DNA of 64,000 bases, taken from the IMG/VR virus record IMGVR_UViG_3300036766_002289, positions 62,001-126,000 of that record. One strand, 5' to 3'. The first letter of the stretch is position 1, and every line of letters starts with the position of its first letter. Of the stretch, positions 5,830 to 52,841 are shown one piece after another. The position numbers and the translations under genes are program-made. Under the pieces are notes generated by a model. It had not been told where the DNA came from. It searched no databases and saw only the letters and a list, made by a program, of their open reading frames with translations.

Positions 5830-6279
5830 ATGTCTGATCGAGTAATGTTCTTTGTTGGCCGAACGATTGGGGCTATTTACTTAACCGCTGGTTTATTTCA
5901 TGTATTTGGCGGTGAAGGCTGTGTAGACACATATTTTATTGGCATTCTCTTAATTGGGGTTCTAGTTTCTTTGGCTCTTGAGAGGGGCATAATCAAGTTC
6001 ATTAAGGACAAAATCATGGGTGTAGACTTCTTTCCTTGTGATTATTGTAGTGAAACAATCTGCGATTGTGGTGATTATATTCGGTGTGATTGTGGACGTG
6101 TGTGGTGCGATGAAAAATGTGCTAAAGAAGAAGGTTTTCGCACTAAGAGGAAGAAAAATACTTGTTCGTTTTGTAGAGTTGAAGCTGCCGAAGATTCTGA
6201 CCTTTTCGAGTTCCTTTTGAAGAAGTATAACCTTACAAGGGATGATGTTCTCAAAGAATATATCAAGAATCATGACTAA
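5830..6279 (+). CDS. hypothetical protein: N-terminal TM helices plus Cys-rich Zn-binding domain
   Basis: MGVDFFPCDYC..CDCG..C..CSFC. Confidence 0.6.
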   Translation: MSDRVMFFVGRTIGAIYLTAGLFHVFGGEGCVDTYFIGILLIGVLVSLALERGIIKFIKDKIMGVDFFPCDYCSETICDCGDYIRCDCGRVWCDEKCAKEEGFRTKRKKNTCSFCRVEAAEDSDLFEFLLKKYNLTRDDVLKEYIKNHD

Positions 6280-6612: not shown

Positions 6613-6772
6613 AGTAGAATTAATAGACGTGCTTCTAAAGCTTGAACAAGCAGTAACTGTGGTAATATCTAACTATGGGTCTGGCAACGCTTCGTCAATG
6701 AACTTAAGTAAAGAATTAAATAATTTTAAAGTGTGCTTATTTAAACTTTTAGCCAGTAATGCCGAGGATTGA
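6599..6772 (+). CDS. small helical hypothetical protein (paralog family)
   Basis: MNKIEVELIDVLLKLE..FKVCLFKLL. Confidence 0.55.
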   Translation: MNKIEVELIDVLLKLEQAVTVVISNYGSGNASSMNLSKELNNFKVCLFKLLASNAED

Positions 6773-7137
6773 ACATGCCTTACGATTCTAATGGTAATTG
6801 GTATGCTCCAACAGGTTCTCATAAAGCGGGGGGATATCCGCCAATGTCGGTTACACCAATTTCACCGCCTCCAGTTTTTAAACCTATAGGGGGAGTTAAT
6901 CCAAATTTTCCGCCTATAGTTTTTCCACCACCATCTCAACCTGTGTATAGTCTACCCCCATATCAACCTGGCATAGTATTTAATTCGACACCACCACCAT
7001 TAATAACTATTACATGTCCAACACTAGTCCCTTTTGATTTTTCATCGCCACTGAAATGCACTTGTGACATAATGGCGTTGATGCAACGGGGTTGTAAATG
7101 TGGGCAATTTGAAAGAGAACAAAAGTCTAAAAACTGA
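6769..7137 (+). CDS. proline-rich protein with C-terminal CTC..GCKCG motif
   Basis: Composition and motif. Confidence 0.6.
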   Translation: MNMPYDSNGNWYAPTGSHKAGGYPPMSVTPISPPPVFKPIGGVNPNFPPIVFPPPSQPVYSLPPYQPGIVFNSTPPPLITITCPTLVPFDFSSPLKCTCDIMALMQRGCKCGQFEREQKSKN

Positions 7138-7186: not shown

Positions 7187-7258
7187 GGGCAGTGTCCTCG
7201 ACGGCTTGAGGGCTGGACTTATATTCCAGCACATGTGGTTCAACTCCATAACTGCCTA
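7187..7258 (+). tRNA. tRNA-Ile(UAU)
   Basis: GGGCAGT/ACTGCCT-A; CCTC/GAGG D-stem; CTGGA-CTTATAT-TCCAG; TGTGG-TTCAACT-CCATA. Confidence 0.85.
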
Positions 7259-7262
7259 CTTC

Positions 7263-33402: not shown

Positions 33403-34467
33403 ATGTTAAGACAAACAATTGCAGTAGCTCATAGCACTACACCTTTTGCTACCTTGTATCCTTGGGGTGGTACTTATTGGACCATAATAGCTAATCCTTC
33501 AACGTTACCTGCTAGTACTGGACAAGATATCAAATGGTCTCCAGATGGAGCTTATGTTGCAATAGGTCATAGCACCACTCCATTTGTAAGTGTATATCCT
33601 TGGACTGGTCAATTTGGGGCTAAATTTGCAGACCCATCAACTTTGCCTCCAGCCGCAGGGAATTGCGTTGCGTGGAGTCCTCGCGGTGATTTCATTGCAG
33701 TTAGTAGCAGTACTACTCCATTCATAAGTGTATATCCTTGGAGTAGTGCTGGATTTGGTGCAAAGGTTGCAGACCCTTCAACTTTACCTACTGGTACTGG
33801 TGTTTTCGGAATGGTTTGGTCTCCTGATGGCAATGCTATTGCACTCGCTGTAAATGATATTAGTAATTTCATCATTGTGTATTCTTGGAGTAGTGCTGGG
33901 TTTGGCTTTAGATATGCTAATTATGTTACCCCGTCAAACACTGGAACTGGAAATTCTGTTGCGTGGTCTCCAGATGGAACTGCAATTGGTGTTACCATTT
34001 TTAACACTCCAGGCATATATACGTGGCCTTGGAGCGGCATTACTGGTTTTGGTGCTAGAATTGCTGATCCTACAACTCTTCCTGGTGGTGCAGGAACTAA
34101 CGGATGCAGTGGTTTTGCATGGTCTCCAGATGGGGCTAATATTGCTATGACGGTCAATGATACTCCTTTTATAGCGGCGTATCCTTGGACTACAAAATTC
34201 GGGGCTAAATTTGCTGATCCATCTACTTTGCCTGTCAGTGGAAACCTTGTTAAACGTAATACTCTTGCATGGTCCCCAGATCAAAAATATGTTACGGGCA
34301 CAACGTCCACTACTCCTTTTATATTTGTTTATCCTTGGAGCAATAGTACTGGACTAGGTACTAAAATTGCTGATCCTTCAACTTTACCAGCAGGGGCTAC
34401 TGGAGGTTGTGCATGGCTTAATAAGCCAATATTACCTAATGCAAAGGTCGTATTTGGCACTGGTTAA
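33403..34467 (+). CDS. 7-bladed WD40-like beta-propeller, paralog 1
   Basis: YPW..FGAK.ADPSTLP..AWSPDG repeats. Confidence 0.85.
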   Translation: MLRQTIAVAHSTTPFATLYPWGGTYWTIIANPSTLPASTGQDIKWSPDGAYVAIGHSTTPFVSVYPWTGQFGAKFADPSTLPPAAGNCVAWSPRGDFIAVSSSTTPFISVYPWSSAGFGAKVADPSTLPTGTGVFGMVWSPDGNAIALAVNDISNFIIVYSWSSAGFGFRYANYVTPSNTGTGNSVAWSPDGTAIGVTIFNTPGIYTWPWSGITGFGARIADPTTLPGGAGTNGCSGFAWSPDGANIAMTVNDTPFIAAYPWTTKFGAKFADPSTLPVSGNLVKRNTLAWSPDQKYVTGTTSTTPFIFVYPWSNSTGLGTKIADPSTLPAGATGGCAWLNKPILPNAKVVFGTG

Positions 34468-34480
34468 GGATATATAAATT

Positions 34481-35411
34481 ATGCTAAAGTTGACATTGGC
34501 GGTTTCGTCAAACTTAACACCGTTTATACAAGCCTATCCTTTCAGTGGAAATTTTTGGCAAAAAGTACCTGATCCTTCAACTCTGCCTGGCGGTTCCCAA
34601 GGAACAGGCACCTGTTGGTCGCCGCGAGGCAGTTATGTTGTGGCACTAAGTAATGCATCTCCTTTTATCCAAGCCTATCCTTGGACTGGTCAATTTGGGG
34701 CTAAAGTTGCAGACCCTACAACTTTACCTCCTGGAGAATGTTTAGATGCAGCATGGCGACCAGATGGCAATTTTATTGCAACGGCTGGATTCACCGCACC
34801 ATGTATAACTGCGTATCCTTGGACTGGAACTGGATTTGGTGCTAAAGTTGCAGACCCAGCCATAGTTCCTTCTAGCACAGGTTGGAGTGTTGCATGGAGT
34901 CCAGATGGCAAGTTTATTGCTGTTGGTAGCGATGTTTCTCCTTTTTTACAAGTATATCCTTGGACTGGAGGTGGGTTTGGTGCTAAAGTTGCAGACCCTT
35001 CAGTAATATCTGTTGGACAATGTTGGGGGGTAAAATGGTCTCCAGCTGGAGATTATATTGCTGTTGGTTGCTCTAATACGCCTTTTATACAAGCTTATTC
35101 TTGGAGCAATAGGTCATAACACTTCGCCTTTCATGAGCGTATATCCTTGGAGTGCTGGATTTGGAGCTAAAGTTGCTGATCCTTCAACTTTACCTGCTGG
35201 CAATGGCTGGCGTATTGCTTGGACACCGCAAGGTGATTATATTGTTTTAGGGCATGATACTACACCATTTGTTAGTGTCTATCCTTGGACTGCTGGGTTT
35301 GGGGCTAAGCTTGCTGATCCTAGCACATTACCTGGAGATAGTGGTTTTGGTGTGGCTTGGCTCCCTCCACCAACATCATATGTTGCCAAGGCATTATTCG
35401 GTTCAGGTTAA
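34481..35411 (+). pseudogene. beta-propeller paralog 2, frameshifted by a deletion at ~35106-35110
   Basis: ORFs 34481..35119 and 35058..35411 join at GCAAT microhomology. Confidence 0.7.
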
Positions 35412-35422
35412 TATATAATAAT

Positions 35423-36469
35423 ATGCTTCAAACTTCAGTTGCAATCGGCTCGGATACGACCTCGCCTTTTTTGTTTGCTTATCCTATAAATGGACAATTT
35501 TATACTAAATACGCAGACCCATCAACGATTCCAACTGGTACTGGTTCTAATGGTGTTGCGTGGAGTCCTGATGGTTCTTATTTTGCTATCGTACATAATG
35601 CATCACCGTTTGTAAGTGTATATCCTTGGACAGGGCAATTTGGTGCTAAAGTTGCTGATCCATCTACTTTGCCCCCCAATACGACAGATACTGTTTTTTG
35701 GTCGCCTGACATGAAATATATTGCTGTTACTTTTCAAGTGACGCCTTTTATATATGTATATCCTTGGAGTAGTGCTGGGTTTGGGGCTAGATTTGCTAAC
35801 CCATCAACGCTTCCTGCTGGTATTGGTTATTGTTCTGCATGGTCTCCTGATGGGCAGTTTCTTGCTGTTAGTCAGCTTACTTCTCCATTTATAGGTGTAT
35901 ATCCTTGGAGTAGTGCTGGATTTGGGCCTAGATTTGCTAACCCATCAACGCTTCCTGCTGGGGCATGTCGTTGGGTTACATGGTCCCCAGATGGAGCATT
36001 TATTGGAATGGGTGTTACAAACACGCCATTTGTAGCAGTGTATCCTTGGACTACTCAAGGATTTGGTGCTAAAATTGCGAACCCTACAACTTTGCCTCCT
36101 GCTTCATCTGGTTGTACAGGCATGTCATGGAGTCCAGATGGAAACTATGTTGGTTTGGTTGGTGATTCTAGTCCTTTCATAAGAGTTTATAACTGGACTA
36201 GTGCTGGATTTGGAACTCCTGTCGCTGATCCTAGTACTTTGCCCAATAGTGTTGCTCGCGGAATTGCATGGTCTCCTGATGGAACCTATGTTGGTGCTTC
36301 TGTCGCAGTGAATCCTGAGATAGTCGTATACCCTTGGAGTGCTGGATTCGGGGCCAAGCTTCCTGATCCTGCAACTGTGCCTGCTGGGACTTCTTTAACA
36401 ATTACATTTACTGGTTCTCAGGCTAAGCCGAAAGCAAGAAAACCATTTAACTCAATTGACTATATATAA
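35423..36469 (+). CDS. beta-propeller paralog 3
   Basis: Same repeat; MLQTSVAIG start. Confidence 0.85.
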   Translation: MLQTSVAIGSDTTSPFLFAYPINGQFYTKYADPSTIPTGTGSNGVAWSPDGSYFAIVHNASPFVSVYPWTGQFGAKVADPSTLPPNTTDTVFWSPDMKYIAVTFQVTPFIYVYPWSSAGFGARFANPSTLPAGIGYCSAWSPDGQFLAVSQLTSPFIGVYPWSSAGFGPRFANPSTLPAGACRWVTWSPDGAFIGMGVTNTPFVAVYPWTTQGFGAKIANPTTLPPASSGCTGMSWSPDGNYVGLVGDSSPFIRVYNWTSAGFGTPVADPSTLPNSVARGIAWSPDGTYVGASVAVNPEIVVYPWSAGFGAKLPDPATVPAGTSLTITFTGSQAKPKARKPFNSIDYI

Positions 36470-36471
36470 TC

Positions 36472-37500
36472 ATGCTTAAACAAGTCCTTGCAGTGGCTCA
36501 TTTTTCAACTCCTTTTGTAAGTGTATACCCCTGGAGTAATAATTTTTGGGGGAAAGTTGCCGATCCTTCGACTTTGCCACCTAATCTTGGCCACGGTGTT
36601 GCATTTAGTCCAGATGGTGCTTTTATTGCTGTGGCACATAGTACAACTCCTTTTGTAAGTGTATATCCTTGGACTGGACAATTTGGTGCTAAAGTTGCAG
36701 ACCCCACAACACTTCCTACTGGTTCTGCCAATAAGGTTGCTTGGAATCCTGCTGGCAATTATATTGCCGTTGCACATGGAACTTCCCCTAGTATAAGTGT
36801 TTATCCTTGGACGACGGCAGGATTTGGTGCTAAAGTTGCGGACCCTTCAACTTTGCCAAATGGTGATTGTTTTGGTCTCGCTTGGTCGCCTAAAGGTGAT
36901 TACATTGCCGTAGGGTTCAATAATAACTCTCCTTTTATAAGTGTGTATCCTTGGAGCAATGGATTTGGTGCTAAGTTTGCTAATCCTTCTGCACCGCTTG
37001 GTGGGACTGGAGAAGGTGTCGCATTTTCCCCAGATGGTAATTATATAGCTGTGGCTCAAGATAGCAGTCCTTATATAAATGCATATCCTTGGAGTAGTGC
37101 AGGATTTGGAAGTATAGTTACCGCACCCACCACTCTTCCTGGTTTACAAGCCTTCGCTGTAAGCTGGTCTCCAGATGGGGCTTATATAGGGGTAGGACAC
37201 GGTAATTCTCCGTTCGTAAGTGTTTACCCTTGGAGTGCTGGGTTTGGTGCCAGACTTGCTAATCCTAGTACATTGCCGCCTAATCAGGTTACAAATTTAG
37301 CATGGTCTCCAGATGGAGCTTATGTTGCTCTGGCACATGCAACTAATCCTGATGTAAGTGTATATCCTTGGAGTGCTGGATTTGGGTCTAAGCTAGCTGA
37401 CCCTTCTACTTTGCCAGTTGGAGGTGGTAATAGCGTTGCTTGGTTTAATCCAAATGTTATAAATCACCCAAAATCTTTATTTGGCACTAATATATTTTAG
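36472..37500 (+). CDS. beta-propeller paralog 4
   Basis: Same repeat. Confidence 0.85.
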   Translation: MLKQVLAVAHFSTPFVSVYPWSNNFWGKVADPSTLPPNLGHGVAFSPDGAFIAVAHSTTPFVSVYPWTGQFGAKVADPTTLPTGSANKVAWNPAGNYIAVAHGTSPSISVYPWTTAGFGAKVADPSTLPNGDCFGLAWSPKGDYIAVGFNNNSPFISVYPWSNGFGAKFANPSAPLGGTGEGVAFSPDGNYIAVAQDSSPYINAYPWSSAGFGSIVTAPTTLPGLQAFAVSWSPDGAYIGVGHGNSPFVSVYPWSAGFGARLANPSTLPPNQVTNLAWSPDGAYVALAHATNPDVSVYPWSAGFGSKLADPSTLPVGGGNSVAWFNPNVINHPKSLFGTNIF

Positions 37501-37506
37501 AGGAAT

Positions 37507-39842
37507 ATGTTAAAATTATCACTTGCAGTAGCACATACCACGACACCCTTTATAAGTGTATACCCTTGGAATGGCGGATTCTGGACGAAGAATGCTAATC
37601 CTAGTACATTACCTGCGGGTGATTGTGTCAATACTGCATGGTCTCCTAATGGTGCTTATGTAGCAGTCACAACTGGCACTTCTCCTTATATAGCTGTCTA
37701 TCCTTGGACAGGGCAGTTTGGTGCTAAATTTGCTGATCCACAGGTTTTACCTGCTGTTCCTGGTGATGTACAATGGTCTCCTAAAGGAGATTTTATTGCT
37801 GTAACTCACACTGTCGCTAATTACATACATGTTTATCCTTGGAACAGTTCTGGTTTTGGTGCGCCAGTAGCGGACCCAGCAACGCCACCTACTGCAAATA
37901 CCATAGGTGTTGCATGGCGTCCCCAAGGTGATTATATTGCTGTTGCCTATGGTGCATCACCTTGGTTAAATGTTTATTCTTGGAATAGTGCTAGTGGATT
38001 TGGTGCCAAAGTTGCTGATCCTAGTACATTGCCAACTGGTATTGGGAATTGTGTTACGTGGTCTCCTTTGGGAGATTATGTTGCCATAGGACATGCCACT
38101 TCCCCTAATATAAGTGTATATCCTTTTTCAAATGGTACATTAGGTGCTAAAATAGCTGACCCTAGTACATTACCTGGGAATACTTGTGTAGGGATACAAT
38201 GGTCTCCACTTGGTAATTTTATTGGTGTTGCTGTCATTGTTTCTCCTTTCGTAGTTGTATATCCTTGGAGTGCTGGATTTGGTGCCAAAGTAGCTGATCC
38301 TAGTACATTACCAGCCAGTACTGGCAGGGGATTATCGTGGTCTCCTGCACAAGATTACCTTGCAGTCGCTCATGATAGTACGCCATTTATAAGTGTATAT
38401 CCGTGGACTGGCACTTTTGGTTCTAAGTTGGCCAACCCTGGAGTATTGCCAGCTAGTGATGGTAAGGACGTTGCGTGGCTTAATGTTCCACAAGTATCCA
38501 AAACAAAGACTTTATTTAATCCGTTTAATCCTAAATCCATATCTGGTTTGGTTTCTTGGCATGATGCTAGTGTTCAGTCATCCCTTTGGCAGAATAGTAC
38601 CAGAACTACGCCTGTAACATCTAATAACGATCCAATTGGTGGCTGGGATGATTTAAGTGGTAATGGATATCACATTATTCAGTCTACGAATGGCAGTAGG
38701 CCACTTTACAAAACTAGTATGCTTAATAACTTGCCAGTGATCCGTGCGGACGGTGTTGACGATTACTTAACTAATGCATCATACACTAATGGCACTACTT
38801 GGTCTATTTTTGTGGTTTGTAGAAGGCTTACCAATAATGTTAATTGTAGATTTCTATGTATTTCTCTAAATGCATCCCCAGGTGGTTCCACTAGTATTAA
38901 TTTATTCAACGACACTACTGGAGTTTTTGGTTATTATGGTGATAACGTGGCTGGTGCCCCTGTATTTTCTCCAGGCAATGATACAATATTTTCTCTTGCA
39001 GAACTTTTATTAACTGGTGGTGGCACGGGAAACGCATATTACAATGGTAATTTGGCAGGCACTTGGACGATGCCAACTCTGTTTTGTCAGCTGCGAATAG
39101 AATCAAAGTAGAAAACTATTTAATGAAAAAATGGAGTCCATTTACATTTACTCCAAATCTAATTCCTGGTTTGTCAGCGTGGTATGATTCAACAAAATTA
39201 ACTTCATTATGGCAAAATAGTACTAGAACAACATCTGTGAAAGTAGATGGTGATTTAGTTGGTGCTTGGGATGATTTGAGTGGGAACGGCAATCATGTTA
39301 TACAATCTGTTAATATAAATAGACCGACATATAAAACTGCTATACAAAATGGCAATCCAATTGTTCGTTTTACTTTTGCAAACGGGACGTTCTTGGCCAA
39401 GACATATGGCACTCTTTTAAGTCAACCAAGTACAATTTTTTGGGCTGGATCATTTGGAAGTCATATAAACACTTTCATTTATGATGGTGTGGATGCAACT
39501 AATAGAAATGTTTTGTGTCATGGACCAAGTGGTAGTGCTGTAAATTTTGGAGCTTTTGCTGGTGTGTCCTTGGAAGCTGCACACGCCATACCAATTGCGG
39601 CAGGGGTATGGTCTGTCGTATTTAATGGTGGTTCAAGTCAGATATGGCAGGATGGAGCTTCATTTACTTCTGGTAATGCGGGGGCGGCAGCAATGGGTGG
39701 TCTAACGATGGGAGCCGCATATACTGGTGGGGCCAATGCTGATGAAGATACTTTTGAATTGATTATATACAACAGGTTGTTAACCACGGATGAGCGACAG
39801 CAGGTGGAAAGGTATCTAAAACTTAAATGGGGAACTCCATAA
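37507..39842 (+). CDS. beta-propeller paralog 5 fused to two LamG/ConA-like lectin domains; frameshift or deletion at ~39074-39078
   Basis: GLVSWHDAS..WDDLSGNG and GLSAWYDS..WDDLSGNG..IIYNRLLT..VERYL; split across ORFs 37507..39111 and 39063..39842. Confidence 0.7.
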
Positions 39843-43017: not shown

Positions 43018-43646
43018 GCTACGATAAAGTAAAATACCAAGCTGAGTACAGAGAGAAAAACAAAGAAAGACTTAACAACTACGACAAAATTCGTAATTCA
43101 ACTGATGAACGTAAGTTGAAGAAAAGTCTAAATCATAAAAAATACTATGCTCTAAACAGAGAAAAAGTAATCGAGCGAACTAGAGAGTACAAAAAAACAC
43201 ATCCTGAATTAAAAATTTTTATTGGGGCTTGGAGAAAAGAATTAAATCAAATTTGGGGTGTTGGCCAAAAAGTAGCATCCCAAGAAGTTGGGTTTAAAGC
43301 TGAAGCAATTATTGCTGCACTGCTTCCGAGCGAAGGTTATCAAGATGTTTATTATGTTGCAGACGACAAGCATTATGCCAATTTTCCAATTGATGTTTTT
43401 GCCAAGAAAGATGGTTTTATACACGCATTCCAAGTAACAACATATCCAAAACGAAAAATTACTTCTAGATTAAGAGATTTAGTCTCATATATGGGTTGGA
43501 TTTTGCATATTACTTTTGTAAGACCTAATTTAAGAGACTATTATGATATAGTAGTCTCATCTGATAGAAAAAACGTCGCTGTGCCAATTGATATTGTAAT
43601 GAAAGAAGGGAGATTGATTCCAAATGAGTTACAACTTACCATTTAG
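43014..43646 (+). CDS. putative free-standing endonuclease (PD-(D/E)XK-like) with basic helical N-terminus
   Basis: YREKNKERL repeats; E..PIDVFAKK..AFQV. Confidence 0.5.
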   Translation: MSYDKVKYQAEYREKNKERLNNYDKIRNSTDERKLKKSLNHKKYYALNREKVIERTREYKKTHPELKIFIGAWRKELNQIWGVGQKVASQEVGFKAEAIIAALLPSEGYQDVYYVADDKHYANFPIDVFAKKDGFIHAFQVTTYPKRKITSRLRDLVSYMGWILHITFVRPNLRDYYDIVVSSDRKNVAVPIDIVMKEGRLIPNELQLTI

Positions 43647-45249
43647 TGAAGGTCAAAAAATAATTGAGTTGGGCGGGGGTCAATTCCCTCGTTTTCGGCC
43701 CAATGTGGACATACGCAAAGAAGATACAGTCGATCTTGTTGCTGACTTCGATGACCCACTTCCGCTGAACCCAAATGAATGGCATGGTGTATTTTGCAGT
43801 TACGTTTTAGAGCATATTTCTTATCGTAAAATTAAACAATTTATCACAGAAGTCCACAGAATCCTTAAGCCAGGCGGCATTGCCGTATTTATTACTGCAA
43901 ACACAGAAGCTCAGATGGAATGGGTTCTGGGACAAAAAGATTGGGACGACCGAGCCTCTTCAATTCTTTATGGCGACCAAGACTATAAAGACAATACACA
44001 CAAGAACACACTTTCACCGAAATATGTTTTTAAACTGCTTCAGGAATTAGGATATAAAGATATCTTTGTCATGCCTTGGGGTGAATTAGGCACCGACATG
44101 ATAATTGAAGCTAAAAAAGAAGTTACAGAAAGAAAAAACTTATTCGATAAGCATTATTTCAATGGTGGTAAAAAAGTCGGCGGTTATGCCAGAGAAGGTT
44201 ATTGGGACTACCCCGTCCATAATGTGACTTTTGATAAAGTAATGGAGCTAAAGCCTAAATCTGTACTGGAAATTGGCTCATCGAGAGGGTATATCCTCAA
44301 GAGAATTCAGGACACAGGTATCCCTGTTCTTGGTTTAGAAATATCTAAGCACTGTTATCTTACTAGAGCAATTAAAGAAATAGTTGAATGGGATTTGTGT
44401 AAGTTTCCGTGGCCAGTCAAAGACAAGGCATTCGACCTAGCTATAAGCTGTGCAGTATTAGAACATATACCAGAGGAACATCTGCCAAGCTTGATTAAGG
44501 AATTAAGTAGAGTAAGCAAGCGTGGTCTTCATGGTGTCGATTTTGGCGAACATGATGATGGTTTTGATAAGACTCATTGTACACTTAAAAAGAGAACTTG
44601 GTGGGAAGAAAAAATGCCTGCCAAACAAGAAGTTATTAATAAGGAAGAATTAGAACAGGGTTCATTATTGAGACATATTCCTGCTGGGGACGATAAGTTG
44701 AAGCTTAATATTGGTTCATTTATAAATCAATTCCACTATGGTTGGTTGAACATGGATATTATTGACCTTAATCAATTTGCAAGGCAAAATTACTATAAGT
44801 TCTTCGCAAGAGATGTTAGAGAAGGACTACCATTTGCAAATAAGTCTGTTGACCTAATGTATTCAAGTCATTTCATCGAACACTTAACATACGCTGAAGC
44901 CAAGGCATTTATTAATGAGTGCAAGAGAGTGATGAAGGAAAATGGGACTGTAAGATTGCTCATTCCAGACCTTGAATTATTGTTTAATAAGTACAAGAGC
45001 AATGAATTAGGCATGTTTGATGAAATCAACGATGATTCGGCATCTTTCAGTACTCAGGCGAGCAAATTGTGGACATTGTTGTTCTCAGGGCATAAGGCCG
45101 CGTTTGATTTCAATACAATCAAAGAAATGGGCACTGAGGCTGGATTTAAAGTAGAGAAAAAGTCATTTAGAGAAGGTCATCCACAAATTATTAAAGAAAC
45201 AATTGATATGCTTCCAGACTTAAGCTTGTTTGTGGAACTCTCTCAGTGA
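43624..45249 (+). CDS. triple-domain SAM-dependent methyltransferase
   Basis: IELGGG..VLEH; LEIGSSRG..VLEH; LNIGS..HFIEH. Confidence 0.85.
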   Translation: MSYNLPFSEGQKIIELGGGQFPRFRPNVDIRKEDTVDLVADFDDPLPLNPNEWHGVFCSYVLEHISYRKIKQFITEVHRILKPGGIAVFITANTEAQMEWVLGQKDWDDRASSILYGDQDYKDNTHKNTLSPKYVFKLLQELGYKDIFVMPWGELGTDMIIEAKKEVTERKNLFDKHYFNGGKKVGGYAREGYWDYPVHNVTFDKVMELKPKSVLEIGSSRGYILKRIQDTGIPVLGLEISKHCYLTRAIKEIVEWDLCKFPWPVKDKAFDLAISCAVLEHIPEEHLPSLIKELSRVSKRGLHGVDFGEHDDGFDKTHCTLKKRTWWEEKMPAKQEVINKEELEQGSLLRHIPAGDDKLKLNIGSFINQFHYGWLNMDIIDLNQFARQNYYKFFARDVREGLPFANKSVDLMYSSHFIEHLTYAEAKAFINECKRVMKENGTVRLLIPDLELLFNKYKSNELGMFDEINDDSASFSTQASKLWTLLFSGHKAAFDFNTIKEMGTEAGFKVEKKSFREGHPQIIKETIDMLPDLSLFVELSQ

Positions 45250-46330: not shown

Positions 46331-47347
46331 ATGTTAAAGTTAACAATTGTTGTCGGGCATAGTACTACGCCATACATAAGCGTGTACCCCTGGAGTAATA
46401 ATTTTTGGACTAAGATTGCTGATCCATCGACTTTGCCTGGGGTTCAGTCTACAGTGACAGTATTGTCTCCAGATGGGAATTATGTTGCCGTAGGGTCTAA
46501 TGGTTCACCTTTTCTACAAGTCTATCCCTGGACAGGACAATTTGGTAATAAAGTTGCTAATCCTAGTATTGCGGCTACAGGTGGAGTTGGTGTTGCTTGG
46601 TCTCCAAATGGTGATTATATTGCAACGGCCTCCCTCTCTTCACCATATATTAACATATATCCTTGGAGCAATGGTGCTTTCGGAGCTAGGTTGCCCGACC
46701 CTTCACCATTACCTCCTTTAACTTCTAGGAATATATCATGGTCTTCAGATGGCAATTATATTGCACTTACCAGTGACACTTCGCCCAGAGTGGTTGTCTA
46801 TCCATTTAATAATGGTGTTTTAGGTAGTAAGTTTGCCGACGCATCTACAATTCCTCCAGGGGCAGGAGGGGGTGTGGCATTCTCCCCCAAAGGGGACTAT
46901 CTTGCGGTAGGTTTTGGAACTTCTTCCCCATTTATATATGTATACCCTTGGAGCAGTGCTGGATTTGGTACTAGAGTTGCTGATCCTAGTACGGTACCTA
47001 CGAATCAGATAAAGGGAATAGCTTGGTCCCTAGACGGAACGTATTTAGCATGTGCATCGGCGGCAACACCTTTTATATTAGTATATCCTTGGAGTGCTGG
47101 ATTTGGAGCAAAACTTGCTGATCCTAGTACTTTACCTACTGGAGCGGGACAAGCCGTAGCATTTAGTCCAGATGGAGCATATATTGCTGTAGCTCATACC
47201 ACTACGCCTTTTGTAAGCGTCTATCCTTGGAATGCGGGATTTGGTGCTAAACTTGCTGATCCTAGTACTTTACCTACTGGCAATGGTGATGGCGTGGCAT
47301 GGCTAAATCCACCAAACTTGAAGCATTTGGCTAGGTGTTTAACTTAA
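46331..47347 (+). CDS. beta-propeller paralog 6 (displaced from the array)
   Basis: MLKLTIVVGHSTTP; same repeat. Confidence 0.85.
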   Translation: MLKLTIVVGHSTTPYISVYPWSNNFWTKIADPSTLPGVQSTVTVLSPDGNYVAVGSNGSPFLQVYPWTGQFGNKVANPSIAATGGVGVAWSPNGDYIATASLSSPYINIYPWSNGAFGARLPDPSPLPPLTSRNISWSSDGNYIALTSDTSPRVVVYPFNNGVLGSKFADASTIPPGAGGGVAFSPKGDYLAVGFGTSSPFIYVYPWSSAGFGTRVADPSTVPTNQIKGIAWSLDGTYLACASAATPFILVYPWSAGFGAKLADPSTLPTGAGQAVAFSPDGAYIAVAHTTTPFVSVYPWNAGFGAKLADPSTLPTGNGDGVAWLNPPNLKHLARCLT

Positions 47348-47352
47348 ATTAA

Positions 47353-47428
47353 TGGGCCTGCTTGGATTTGAACCAAGGACCAAGGTTTTATGAGAACCCT
47401 GCTCTAGGCCAGACTGAGCTACAGGCCC
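47353..47428 (-). tRNA. tRNA with CAU anticodon, probably Ile2
   Basis: GGGCCTG/CAGGCCC-A acceptor; GGGTT-CTCATAA-AACCT; no initiator features. Confidence 0.9.
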
Positions 47429-48725: not shown

Positions 48726-49811
48726 TCAACTGGCGTCCTTTAATTTTTCTTTTGATTGCCTTACCATGACGGCTTCTTCTTTTGTTTTGTAATAGCCAAG
48801 ATGCTTTTTGCCCATATGTGCTGACCATTTTTTCTTGTCTTTGTTCCAAGAAACGCCTACCACCCCAGACCTATTGCGAAAGTTTTTGATTTTCCATCTT
48901 TTTCTTAAAACGTTGTAAATGTAAAGTTTAGGATAATTTATTTCTTTGGCTATTTCATCTAAATTTAATCCATTATCAAAAAGGGCCATTATGAGTTGCT
49001 TAGTTTCTTCTGAAGAGACATTGAATTTATATTCTGGGTATTTTTCTAAACTAATCTTATATTCCATGCATGGATGCGGGATATAGGGTTTTATCAAGTC
49101 GATAAAACCTAAATATGAACTAGTGCCTATGTATATTTTTGGAAAGTTCGCATGGCAATTTGTTATGCCAAGCGTTTTAATTTTTGAAATTAGGAATTCT
49201 ATTTCTTTAGCAGTAAAGCAGTTAACACATAATTCTGCGCTTCTTTTTGCTGACATATTGCACCCGTCATCCATGAACCATATCGCTAAAGAAAATGGTG
49301 TTAATAATAAATCTTGTGGCACTATCTTAATTTTTTTATTATCTTTTAAGACGTAATTATTATTTTGATCTCGCTTATACCATTTATATTCCAACTCCGT
49401 GAACGTCGGATGACAAATTGTTCGTAATGTAAAATTATCTGTGCCATTAATTATTAACTCACAAGGCGTTTTTTTGGTTTGAAAGAACTTCTTACTAAAT
49501 GGCAGCAATTCTTGAAACTTCCAATAACAATATTCTTTCTGGGGTGTGCCGTGCCCTTCTTGGAATTGTGAATTATAGGTTTTTCTTCTGGGAGTGGTAA
49601 GACACCCATCCCCTAAAAGGGAGCCTACAATAATTTCTTGTTGTCTTTCTGTAAGTTGAATCGCAAATTTGATATCGGTTTTTGTGGGAAGCCCATATCT
49701 TAATACTAAGTTATAAACTGAGCTATGAGAAATTTTGAAAAATTCAATGATTTCAGATACTGAATGATATTCATAGTAGTTTACAAAATCTTCTTTATTG
49801 ATATTTAACAT
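48726..49811 (-). CDS. LAGLIDADG homing endonuclease with C-terminal AP2 domain
   Basis: IIVGSLLGDG; LAIWFMDDG; SGVVGVSWNKDKKKWSA..HLGYY. Confidence 0.9.
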   Translation of the reverse strand: MLNINKEDFVNYYEYHSVSEIIEFFKISHSSVYNLVLRYGLPTKTDIKFAIQLTERQQEIIVGSLLGDGCLTTPRRKTYNSQFQEGHGTPQKEYCYWKFQELLPFSKKFFQTKKTPCELIINGTDNFTLRTICHPTFTELEYKWYKRDQNNNYVLKDNKKIKIVPQDLLLTPFSLAIWFMDDGCNMSAKRSAELCVNCFTAKEIEFLISKIKTLGITNCHANFPKIYIGTSSYLGFIDLIKPYIPHPCMEYKISLEKYPEYKFNVSSEETKQLIMALFDNGLNLDEIAKEINYPKLYIYNVLRKRWKIKNFRNRSGVVGVSWNKDKKKWSAHMGKKHLGYYKTKEEAVMVRQSKEKLKDAS

Positions 49812-51482: not shown

Positions 51483-51510
51483 ATTGTATCAGCAATTCAT
51501 GCTTTGTCAA
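51483..51510 (-). promoter_or_regulatory. sigma70-like promoter for the leftward operon
   Basis: TTGACA-16 nt-TACAAT on the minus strand. Confidence 0.6.
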
Positions 51511-52183
51511 GAGTATTTTGTTTGTGGGGGCAGATACCATTTACTCTTTTTCCCCAATTGCAATTCATACATAATACCTGCACTACGTTAGGATAACCAT
51601 TTCTTTTAAGCCATAAATACAAAGATTTACCATGCCCGCCACTAGTATGATATTTACCATATCTACTAGTGCTTATTTCTCTTCTATGTTTGGCACCATC
51701 ATTATGAATATGGTCTAAAGTTAAAAAGTCTTTTATTGTTTCTTTGCAACAATTACATTCATAGCCGCCATATTGCAAATAAGCTTCATCTTTCAGTTTG
51801 ATATGATATTGAAAAGATTGTTTGATACAATCATCACATCTTTTTTTATCATCTGCTTTTGGATTACCACATCTATAACATAATCCCAACGCAATAAATT
51901 GCTCTGCTCTGATTTTATGCGAAAGCCTGTCATTTTCTTTACGATTTTCGTACTCTAATTTTTGTCGATCCCTTCTAGATTGACGACAAGTTTCACATTC
52001 TCTGGCATTTACTAGTGGTTGTTCACCGCAAAGAGAACACAATCCATTTTTTATTCGTTCTCTTTCTCTTTTGTTATTTTTATATGTTTTGTTTTGTCGA
52101 TCTTTCCTTTTTTGCCTACAGCTTTCACATTCACTAGAATTTACCAATGGTAGTTTATGACATTTTTTACATAATCTTTCCAA
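51497..52183 (-). CDS. HNH-type homing endonuclease with repeated Zn fingers
   Basis: CxxC repeats; LTLDHIHNDG..QVLCMNCNWGK. Confidence 0.8.
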   Translation of the reverse strand: MERLCKKCHKLPLVNSSECESCRQKRKDRQNKTYKNNKRERERIKNGLCSLCGEQPLVNARECETCRQSRRDRQKLEYENRKENDRLSHKIRAEQFIALGLCYRCGNPKADDKKRCDDCIKQSFQYHIKLKDEAYLQYGGYECNCCKETIKDFLTLDHIHNDGAKHRREISTSRYGKYHTSGGHGKSLYLWLKRNGYPNVVQVLCMNCNWGKRVNGICPHKQNTLDKA

Positions 52184-52200
52184 ATTTCCTCCAAAACATA

Positions 52201-52451
52201 TATAACTTAGTTCACGTAGCCACCCTTTTGTGTTAGGTCTACATTTATCTCGTCTTTATGACGGGCAGTCTATTACGACACGCCTGCACCAACCCGACCA
52301 TCATAGCGTTGTTCATCCACATAGGTCTGTTTGGCTTGCACGTATTTTGGTATAACGATACTTGCAATTTCTTGCGTTCTCTTCCAAAATAAAACAAATG
52401 TGGGGTGAGCTTCCTCTGGTTTTAGCAGCGTAGACCCAGAACCAAATTATA
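52201..52451 (-). ncRNA. rnpB: RNase P RNA, compact and phage-encoded
   Basis: P1 TATAATTTGGTTC/GAACTAAGTTATA; P2 GGTCTAC/GTAGACC; CR-I GAGGA; P4 AGC(U)CACCC/GGGTGGCT; GTGCAAG; P15/16 with GGGT; CR-IV AGATAAATG; CR-V ACAAAA. Confidence 0.82.
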
Positions 52452-52493
52452 TATGCTTAGAGAAAACAAAATTTCAAAATTTTCTCTAATAAA

Positions 52494-52841
52494 CTACGAC
52501 TCTTTTATAACATCCATGTCCGATTTGTCAAGAAGAATCAGTTGAAATCTCAAATTTCCTTCTACGATATGGGGGTCGAGAATTAAACGAAAATCAAGCC
52601 TTGTTCTGGCTTCCATTAAACACTCAAAGAGTTTTTTATAATCTGTGATTGTCATACACTCAGCACCTTGGAAACCCCATTCATCGTATTTTTCTTTTGT
52701 AGAAAAGAGTGGGATTAAAAGCCCATCTGCACATTCGATGACGATCATTTTCTTCGTATCGGGATGTACGGGATACACAGCCCCGTTCAATTCCGATTTT
52801 TCAAATTTGTCTTCTAGTCTTTTCATGATGGTTGGTGCCAT
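52494..52841 (-). CDS. hypothetical protein (SseB-like IPLFST motif)
   Basis: ORF. Confidence 0.55.
   Translation of the reverse strand: MAPTIMKRLEDKFEKSELNGAVYPVHPDTKKMIVIECADGLLIPLFSTKEKYDEWGFQGAECMTITDYKKLFECLMEARTRLDFRLILDPHIVEGNLRFQLILLDKSDMDVIKES

Follow-up and report, generated by a model that had tools for sequence, protein, structure and literature searches.

Large phages bring their own translation-related RNAs, including tRNA arrays and tmRNA. Could a huge phage also carry its own copy of the ribozyme that trims the 5' ends of tRNAs? This question was raised by a non-coding region on the minus strand of IMG/VR contig UViG_3300036766_002289 (390,039 bp), of which we analyzed a stretch of 64,000 nt, hereafter the window. 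A preliminary description, made from the sequence alone, proposed that this region encodes a minimized RNase P RNA. RNase P RNA is one of the few ribozymes shared by all domains of life and has been treated as a strictly cellular gene, and a 2016 survey of RNase P diversity does not contain the word virus. Here, homology, covariation, and genomic context support the proposal that the phage encodes its own miniature RNase P RNA, of bacterial type A, although in the absence of expression or activity data its role in tRNA processing remains an inference. It is one of at least 119 distinct sequences on viral contigs, usually inside phage tRNA gene clusters. We found no paper describing such RNAs in the full texts that we searched, although a prior description cannot be excluded since subscription journals were largely missing from that search.

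Anatomy of the locus

The region lies between two minus-strand ORFs (52494-52841 and 51497-52183) and has no credible ORF of its own. Almost every element in the preliminary description is present (Table 1), including P2, the short P3, CR-I, the P4 of 3 bp, a bulged U, and 5 bp, P5 and J5/15, P15 and P16 with the GGGU loop, CR-IV, CR-V, and a specificity domain (S-domain) reduced to one 8-bp stem, a small internal loop, and P12. However, P1 is longer than the 13 bp first proposed, and the proposed P6 (CACAU/AUGUG) is wrong, since a different pairing covaries across the family. In addition, there are two hairpins between P15 and CR-IV, of which the one next to CR-IV is in the P18 position.

Table 1. 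Features of the RNase P RNA gene in the window (A1 is the alignment of 40 unique family members; L186 is a syntenic relative and L173 a better-conserved relative, both described in the text).
Feature	Position	Strand	Sequence and pairing	Support
Whole RNase P RNA gene, P1 5' end to P1 3' end	52198-52454	-	about 257 nt	Rfam local match at 52205-52447; row 1 of A1
P1 5' strand	52438-52454	-	pairs with 52198-52214; about 17 bp including G-U pairs and one mismatch	covaries in A1; recovered in the MFE fold
P2 5' strand	52430-52436	-	GGUCUAC; pairs with GUAGACC at 52236-52242	3-6 pair types per position
J2/3 and minimal P3 hairpin	52416-52429	-	CUG/CAG with a 7-nt loop	P3 covaries in A1; the GC after P2 is invariant
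CR-I and P4 5' strand	52403-52416	-	CR-I GAGGAA (52416-52411); P4 AGC-U-CACCC (52411-52403, U52408 bulged), with GGGUGGCU at 52225-52218	P4 geometry kept in 140 of 162 viral loci, with many different complementary strand pairs
P5 5' strand	52399-52402	-	pairs with 52339-52341; P5 3' strand and J5/15 read GUG-CAA (52341-52336)	RNAalifold columns 85-88 with 239-242, with compensatory changes
P6 pseudoknot 5' strand	52393-52397	-	UUGUU; pairs with AACAA at 52309-52313 in the P17 loop	columns 90-94 with 285-289
Reduced specificity domain	52343-52391	-	stem UAUUUUGG/CCAAAAUA (52384-52391 with 52343-52350); 5' junction AA; P12 (52357-52381, GAAA loop); 3' junction GUUAUA (52351-52356)	similar layout in the first 40 unique members examined; stem register unclear in one subgroup
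J5/15	52336-52338	-	CAA	two A's (A114 and A115) invariant in A1, not imposed by the search pattern
P15, P16, P17, and L15	52288-52335	-	P15 52332-52335 with 52288-52291; P16 52324-52327 with 52296-52299; P17 52318-52320 with 52306-52308; L15 with GGGU (52292-52295)	P15 and P16 covary; G157 invariant and G158 and U159 nearly invariant in A1; aligned to P15-P17 of RF00010 in relatives
Extra hairpin A between P15 and P18	52264-52284	-		identical in L186; absent from the smallest class
P18-position hairpin	52251-52263	-	CGUC-AUAAA-GACG	CAUC/GAUG in L186 (compensated); aligned to P18 of RF00010 in L173
CR-IV, P2 3' strand, J2/4, CR-V, and P4 3' strand	52218-52250	-	CR-IV AGAUAAAUG (52250-52242); J2/4 UAAC; CR-V ACAAAA (52231-52226); P4 3' strand GGGUGGCU (52225-52218)	aligned with high posterior to the Rfam model

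Taken alone, the sequence is weak evidence. An Rfam scan of the window at gathering finds only six tRNAs, and a permissive local scan gives a full-length but sub-threshold match to the archaeal model RNaseP_arch (RF00373), with 23.7 bits against a gathering score of 84 and an E-value of 5.6e-5 for 461 nt, which by our own scaling to the whole window is about 8e-3. The MFE z-score is only -2.3. On this single-sequence signal, and given that AT-rich motif patterns give many chance hits, a chance resemblance in an AT-rich intergenic region would be conceivable, and the decisive evidence is comparative.

Relatives on viral contigs and covariation

BLAST of the RNA and of 15 kb around it against 50,697 GenBank phages returned nothing, exact 15-16-mers of CR-I/P4 and CR-V/P4 found only the source contig as a true hit, and a two-motif pattern (CR-IV and CR-V) was too AT-rich and gave chance hits. 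Rather, a three-motif pattern (CR-I, 140-170 nt, CR-IV, 9-14 nt, CR-V) that leaves every helix free returned 52 viral loci. In 48 of these, the bases after GAGGA are perfectly complementary to the bases after ACARAA, in the geometry of 3 bp, a bulged U, and 5 bp, with at least 15 different complementary strand pairs, while the four failures read like coding sequence. Two more scans, with spacings of 110-140 and 170-200 nt, raised the total to 140 of 162 loci passing an 8/8 P4 test, giving 119 unique sequences. By our arithmetic, the chance of 8/8 pairing for one random pair of strands is about 4e-4, and together with the model matches of relatives described below this refutes a chance resemblance. 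Because CR-I (GAGGAA), CR-IV (AGAURAAUG), and CR-V (ACARAA) served as the search pattern, their invariance in the family is not independent evidence, but their presence in the window, in the canonical order and spacing relative to P2 and P4, is.

The alignment of 40 unique members (A1), folded with RNAalifold, recovers P1, P3, P4, P5, P15, and P16, with compensatory double changes in 27 of 31 pairs. P2 crosses P4 and cannot be shown in a nested fold; in a fixed-register test it pairs in 90% of cells versus 57% for mismatched partners. A free 5-mer search for P6 that allowed G-U did not discriminate (66% in cross controls), whereas in fixed register a P6 pseudoknot between J5/7 and the P17 loop pairs in 90% of cells versus 54% in the control. 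Positions that the pattern did not impose are also invariant or nearly so, namely the GC after P2, the two A's of J5/15, and the GGU of L15. The latter two appear to correspond to A248 and G292-U294 of the E. coli enzyme, which contact the tRNA N-1 and the 3' CCA.

Selection on the structure is directly evident in the lineage of the window copy. L186, from a 373-kb contig, is syntenic, with colinear flanking proteins at 50-86% identity and the RNA in the same slot at 76% identity. The differences are concentrated in helices as compensatory changes, in P2, P4 (CACCC/GGGUG to CAGCC/GGCUG), P6 (UUGUU/AACAA to CCACU/AGUGG), P17, P18, and the S-domain stem, while J5/15-P15-L15 and hairpin A are identical.

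These observations bear on the possibility that the RNA is a decaying relic of a host rnpB picked up with tRNA genes, or cellular DNA misassigned to a virus, with no current function. On one hand, Rfam scores are below threshold, and some phage-type copies (loci L217 and L259) sit in contigs binned into bacterial or archaeal MAGs. However, pervasive compensatory substitutions, including those between two syntenic phages, show purifying selection on structure, the same derived S-domain design is shared by phages from many samples, and the search pattern did not constrain any helix. In addition, the RNA is present in a cultured phage and in a curated phage genome (below), small cellular RNase P RNAs found with the same pattern keep canonical S-domain motifs and look different, and the window carries tail-fibre and virion-protein hits, homing endonucleases, and several PHROG families. 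We thus consider a relic or contamination very unlikely.

Affinity and reduction of the specificity domain

Better-conserved members match the bacterial class A model (RF00010) across model positions 1-367, with 70.7 bits for L173 (E 1.2e-21 locally), 65.9 for L181, 62.5 for L165, and 54.7 for the copy in Stenotrophomonas phage DLP6, all below the Rfam gathering threshold of 100 bits. The L173 alignment shows P1-P3, CR-I, P5, P15-P17, L15, P18, CR-IV, and CR-V all aligned, with about 140 model positions of the specificity domain replaced by about 56 nt. The preliminary description considered the P4 sequence closer to the archaeal form, but an archaeal affinity is not supported. The window copy is a diverged member for which the archaeal model happens to score best, and the archaeal model gives only 26.3 bits for L186 and 39.2 for L177, another relative. 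The P6 pseudoknot, P15-P17 with the L15 GGU, and P18 are bacterial type A traits, and the GAGGAAGYUC form of CR-I is a family trait with a compensating change in the 3' strand. In 33 of 40 members, the second P4 pair is G-C where the bacterial consensus has A-U.

In the 40 members examined, the S-domain shows one recurring layout, in which a 4-8-bp stem encloses a 2-nt 5' junction (GA or AA), a P12 of variable length, and a 6-7-nt 3' junction (GUUAUA-like), with no P8/P9 and no P13/P14. Cores from P2 to P4 run from 170 to 331 nt, with a median of 217 nt and 219 nt in the window, and a class of 32 very small cores (170-190 nt) also lacks both hairpins between P15 and CR-IV.

Compared with E. 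coli M1 RNA and Thermotoga maritima P RNA, representatives of RF00010, the family keeps the catalytic domain (C-domain), with P1-P5, the P2/P4 pseudoknot with a bulged U, the P6 pseudoknot, P15-P16-P17 with the L15 GGU, P18, and CR-I/IV/V in the same order and spacing. It differs in total size, which we estimate at about 200-330 nt from the measured cores plus P1 versus the typical 340-420 nt (PMC4919922), in the reduced S-domain, in a CR-I that usually reads GAGGAAGUUC with a compensating change in the P4 3' strand, in the extra hairpin before P18 in many members and the absence of P18 in the smallest, and in being encoded by phages inside tRNA arrays. The minimal RNase P RNA of Pyrobaculum and other Thermoproteaceae (type T, called type P in PMC4919922; Lai et al. 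2010) is also a natural RNA in which the specificity domain has been drastically reduced while the catalytic domain is kept. However, that RNA is archaeal and cellular, works with several archaeal proteins, and lacks nearly the whole S-domain including P12, whereas the phage RNAs are bacterial type A in their C-domain features (P6, L15 GGU, P18) and keep P12 with conserved junctions. Diverged RNase P RNAs of CPR bacteria (Lui et al. 2021, PMC8172020) are likewise reduced, are missed by standard Rfam thresholds, and lack P13, P14, and sometimes P18, but they are the cell's own single-copy enzyme. Engineered catalytic domains and the Mycoplasma fermentans P RNA, a known natural bacterial reduction, show that a type A/B catalytic domain with little or no S-domain can still cleave pre-tRNA, with lower affinity, with or without RnpA (PMC4919922). 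The engineered forms are laboratory constructs, and M. fermentans P RNA is a cellular enzyme that lacks P12, while the phage family is natural, diverse, keeps P12, and is carried by viruses. At an estimated 200-260 nt, these RNAs are a natural experiment in how far the specificity domain can shrink, and they could also serve as small tRNA-processing parts for cell-free and synthetic systems.

Genomic context

Family genes are characteristically embedded in phage tRNA arrays. In the first 40 loci, all 303 tRNA genes are on the strand of the RNA gene, and 56% encode CCA. Over all 140 loci, 1,039 of 1,042 neighboring tRNA genes share the strand, 107 loci hold tRNAs, and 49 have one within 60 nt of the core, with the tRNA often abutting P1. 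tmRNA genes occur in some arrays (locus L202 and DLP6), and many carrier contigs are 150-527 kb long. Cultured T4-like Stenotrophomonas phage DLP6 has an unannotated copy in a 258-nt gap between a CDS and tRNA-Arg (54.7 bits, E 1.3e-14), and the curated 735-kb phage genome LR756501, the record in size, has a clear copy whose CR-V reads ACAGGA, which was missed by both our pattern and cmscan and was recognized by eye. BLAST of two family members against GenBank phages gave only short hits, and the DLP6 copy finds only itself, as BLAST is too insensitive for this RNA. Since the RNAs score below Rfam thresholds, standard annotation misses them, and tRNA-rich phage genomes, including these two, are currently under-annotated.

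Unlike most relatives, the window copy lies among protein genes, and the nearest same-strand tRNA (47353-47428) is about 4.8 kb away. None of the seven tRNA genes of the window encodes CCA, although L15 keeps GGU. Six of the seven score 56-70 bits on the standard tRNA model, which is ordinary, and the suggestion in the preliminary description that the ribozyme suits tRNAs with aberrant D/T loops is not supported. No sigma-70-like promoter lies directly upstream of the RNA, and a TATATA motif considered as a shared promoter upstream of the RNA and the tRNAs is not enriched (13 found, against about 23 that we estimate from base composition).

Publications on huge phages describe their tRNAs and tmRNA, but those that we checked do not mention RNase P, with the exception of Lui et al. 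(PMC8172020), who discuss it only for CPR bacteria and separately assembled megaphages with 74 tRNAs and a tmRNA, in which no RNase P RNA was reported. The DLP6 genome paper and a global survey of viral tRNA clusters do not mention it either.

Inferred function

Given this structure and context, we think it likely that the window RNA, like its relatives, acts in the maturation of phage tRNAs. The RNA would be transcribed with neighboring genes and, in many relatives, cut out of a tRNA-array transcript by the tRNA-processing enzymes. It would cleave the 5' leaders of the phage's own pre-tRNAs, and probably tmRNA precursors where present, which would give a phage with dozens of tRNA genes its own supply of the catalytic subunit. 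It most likely pairs with the host RnpA protein through the type A catalytic domain, since no phage rnpA was found among the 72 small ORFs of the window, which covers only 64 kb of the 390-kb genome. As P8/P9 and P13/P14 are missing, binding of the tRNA elbow may be weak, and recognition should rely more on the acceptor-stem and leader contacts of the C-domain, on L15-CCA pairing where CCA is present, and on the protein.

Alternatively, the RNA could be a non-catalytic decoy that soaks up host RnpA, or pre-tRNAs, and so depresses host tRNA maturation during takeover. The loss of most of the S-domain and the lack of a phage rnpA among the ORFs scanned fit this idea, and such an RNA would presumably compete with host P RNA for the same protein. 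However, a sponge has no need to preserve the active-site geometry, and the bulged U in P4, CR-I/IV/V, the J5/15 AA, the L15 GGU, and the P6 pseudoknot are kept across 119 diverged sequences. Placement inside the phage's own tRNA arrays on the same strand also fits making tRNAs rather than blocking them, and the phage's tRNAs would suffer from a block too. We therefore regard a decoy as unlikely.

An active ribozyme whose main substrates are not tRNAs cannot be excluded, although we consider it improbable. With the elbow-binding parts of the S-domain lost, the RNA might process phage polycistronic transcripts, tmRNA, or other structured RNAs, or cut host RNAs, and the position of the window copy among protein genes and the tmRNA genes of some arrays are compatible with this. 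On the other hand, the linkage with tRNA genes is widespread and strand-specific, and P12 with its conserved flanking junctions is kept, as is the likely CCA-binding GGU. This reading overlaps with the one that we favor rather than excluding it.

A more far-reaching possibility, which we consider doubtful but not excluded, is that large phages carry a self-sufficient, orthogonal tRNA-maturation module. In that case, the ribozyme would work without host RnpA, either alone or with a still unrecognized phage protein, would be released from the tRNA-array transcript by its own activity, and would let the phage mature its tRNAs when host RNase P is unavailable, limiting, or excluded. It would then be the smallest natural bacterial-type RNase P, and a virus-borne ribozyme essential to a viral translation strategy.

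Cellular genomes and neighboring proteins

The same three-motif pattern in 185,579 species genomes gave 63 hits, of which 29 pass the P4 test. Most of the 29 carry canonical cellular CR-I/CR-V (GAGGAAAGUCC...GGCUUA) and canonical S-domain motifs, come from about 10 Elusimicrobia MAGs, CPR MAGs, and archaea, and look like small cellular enzymes. Only two are phage-type, on contigs of 546 and 170 kb binned into MAGs, and we suspect that these are mis-binned phages. The phage family is therefore distinct from the small cellular forms found here.

Across 119 loci, no conserved protein family recurs beside the RNA. The largest cluster of neighboring ORFs covers 10 loci, and no RnpA turned up in the ten largest clusters. 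An RNA 2'-phosphotransferase (Tpt1/KptA) recurs in 8 loci.

Genes in the window and near other RNase P RNA genes

The RNA gene in the window has a mobile-endonuclease gene, and an ORF that looks like one, in its vicinity (see table of features). The Cys-rich ORF that lies immediately downstream of the RNA gene has no Pfam or PHROG hit, but carries an HNH-like motif (DHIH...N). Because it is largely absent from the syntenic relative L186, where about 360 nt replace about 750 nt, it looks like a mobile endonuclease insertion next to the ribozyme gene. A second mobile-endonuclease gene, within 3 kb of the RNA, combines a LAGLIDADG_2 homing-endonuclease domain (E 1.7e-28) with a C-terminal HNH-like region.

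Among its 72 small ORFs, the window encodes a PTH2-type peptidyl-tRNA hydrolase (E 6.5e-30), a NADAR domain protein (E 2.3e-30), and an N6/N4 DNA methylase, and a 541-aa methyltransferase has a weak tRNA-methyltransferase PHROG hit. One tRNA-Ile (anticodon UAU) was called by ARAGORN but is not reported at gathering by the Rfam tRNA model, whereas the other six tRNAs of the window score 56-70 bits. Across the family, an RNA 2'-phosphotransferase (Tpt1/KptA, E 2e-41), an enzyme of tRNA splicing and repair, recurs within 3 kb of the ribozyme gene in 8 of 119 loci (L176 and seven others). In addition, suppressor tRNA genes (anticodons CUA and UUA) lie near the RNase P RNA gene in four loci, which suggests that some carrier phages use recoded stop codons. 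Elsewhere in the window, four adjacent ORFs all hit the same PHROG of unknown function (phrog_19311), and DNA segments about 75% identical are repeated between 35.1 kb and 47.1 kb.

Features of the window, of phage DLP6, and of other loci carrying RNase P RNA genes
Sequence	Position	Strand	Feature
Window	7187-7259		tRNA-Ile (UAU)
Window	33403-34467; 35357-36469; 36472-37500; 37507-39111		Four adjacent phrog_19311 ORFs (region 33403-39111)
Window	35139-35373 versus about 47069-47315		Repeated DNA segments
Window	43624-45249		541-aa methyltransferase
Window	48726-49811	minus	361-aa LAGLIDADG_2/HNH-like ORF
Window	51497-52183	minus	228-aa Cys-rich ORF
L278 (DLP6)	868-1089 (KU682439.2, about 102838-103059)		Permuted tmRNA
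L278 (DLP6)	1666-1736; 2170-2242; 5928-5999; 6691-6764; 6857-6928		Examples of unannotated Rfam tRNA hits
L167	1739-1810		Suppressor tRNA
L168	1065-1139		Suppressor tRNA
L176	11265-11338		Suppressor tRNA
L179	2573-2647		Suppressor tRNA
L176	4548-5102		RNA 2'-phosphotransferase (Tpt1/KptA)
L192	794-1049		Family member with P12 insertion
L212	749-1008		Family member with P12 insertion
L217	5557-5801		Phage-type RNase P RNA
L259	2612-2861		Phage-type RNase P RNA

Structured RNAs in phage DLP6 and two family members

In phage DLP6, the tRNA region contains a permuted tmRNA (RF04321, 136.8 bits) that is unannotated, and several Rfam tRNA hits in this region are also missing from the GenBank annotation. 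In two family members, L192 and L212, P12 carries a long insertion containing a tRNA T-arm-like hairpin (GUUCGAAUC or GGUUCAAGUCC loops), and a piece of a tRNA-like structure appears to sit inside the P12 of the ribozyme.

Small RNase P RNAs on MAG contigs

About ten Elusimicrobia-type MAG contigs (L221, L233, L238, L245, L247, L249, L252, L255, L265, and L215) carry a small (about 240-265 nt) cellular-type RNase P RNA. This RNA has canonical CR-I/CR-V and S-domain motifs, but CR-IV directly follows P15, so there is no P18. Another compact form is found in CPR-like contigs (L228, L232, L242, L248). Phage-type RNase P RNAs occur on a 546-kb contig binned as Bacteriovoracaceae (L217) and on a 170-kb contig binned as Methanobacterium (L259), and these contigs may be huge phages mis-binned into MAGs.
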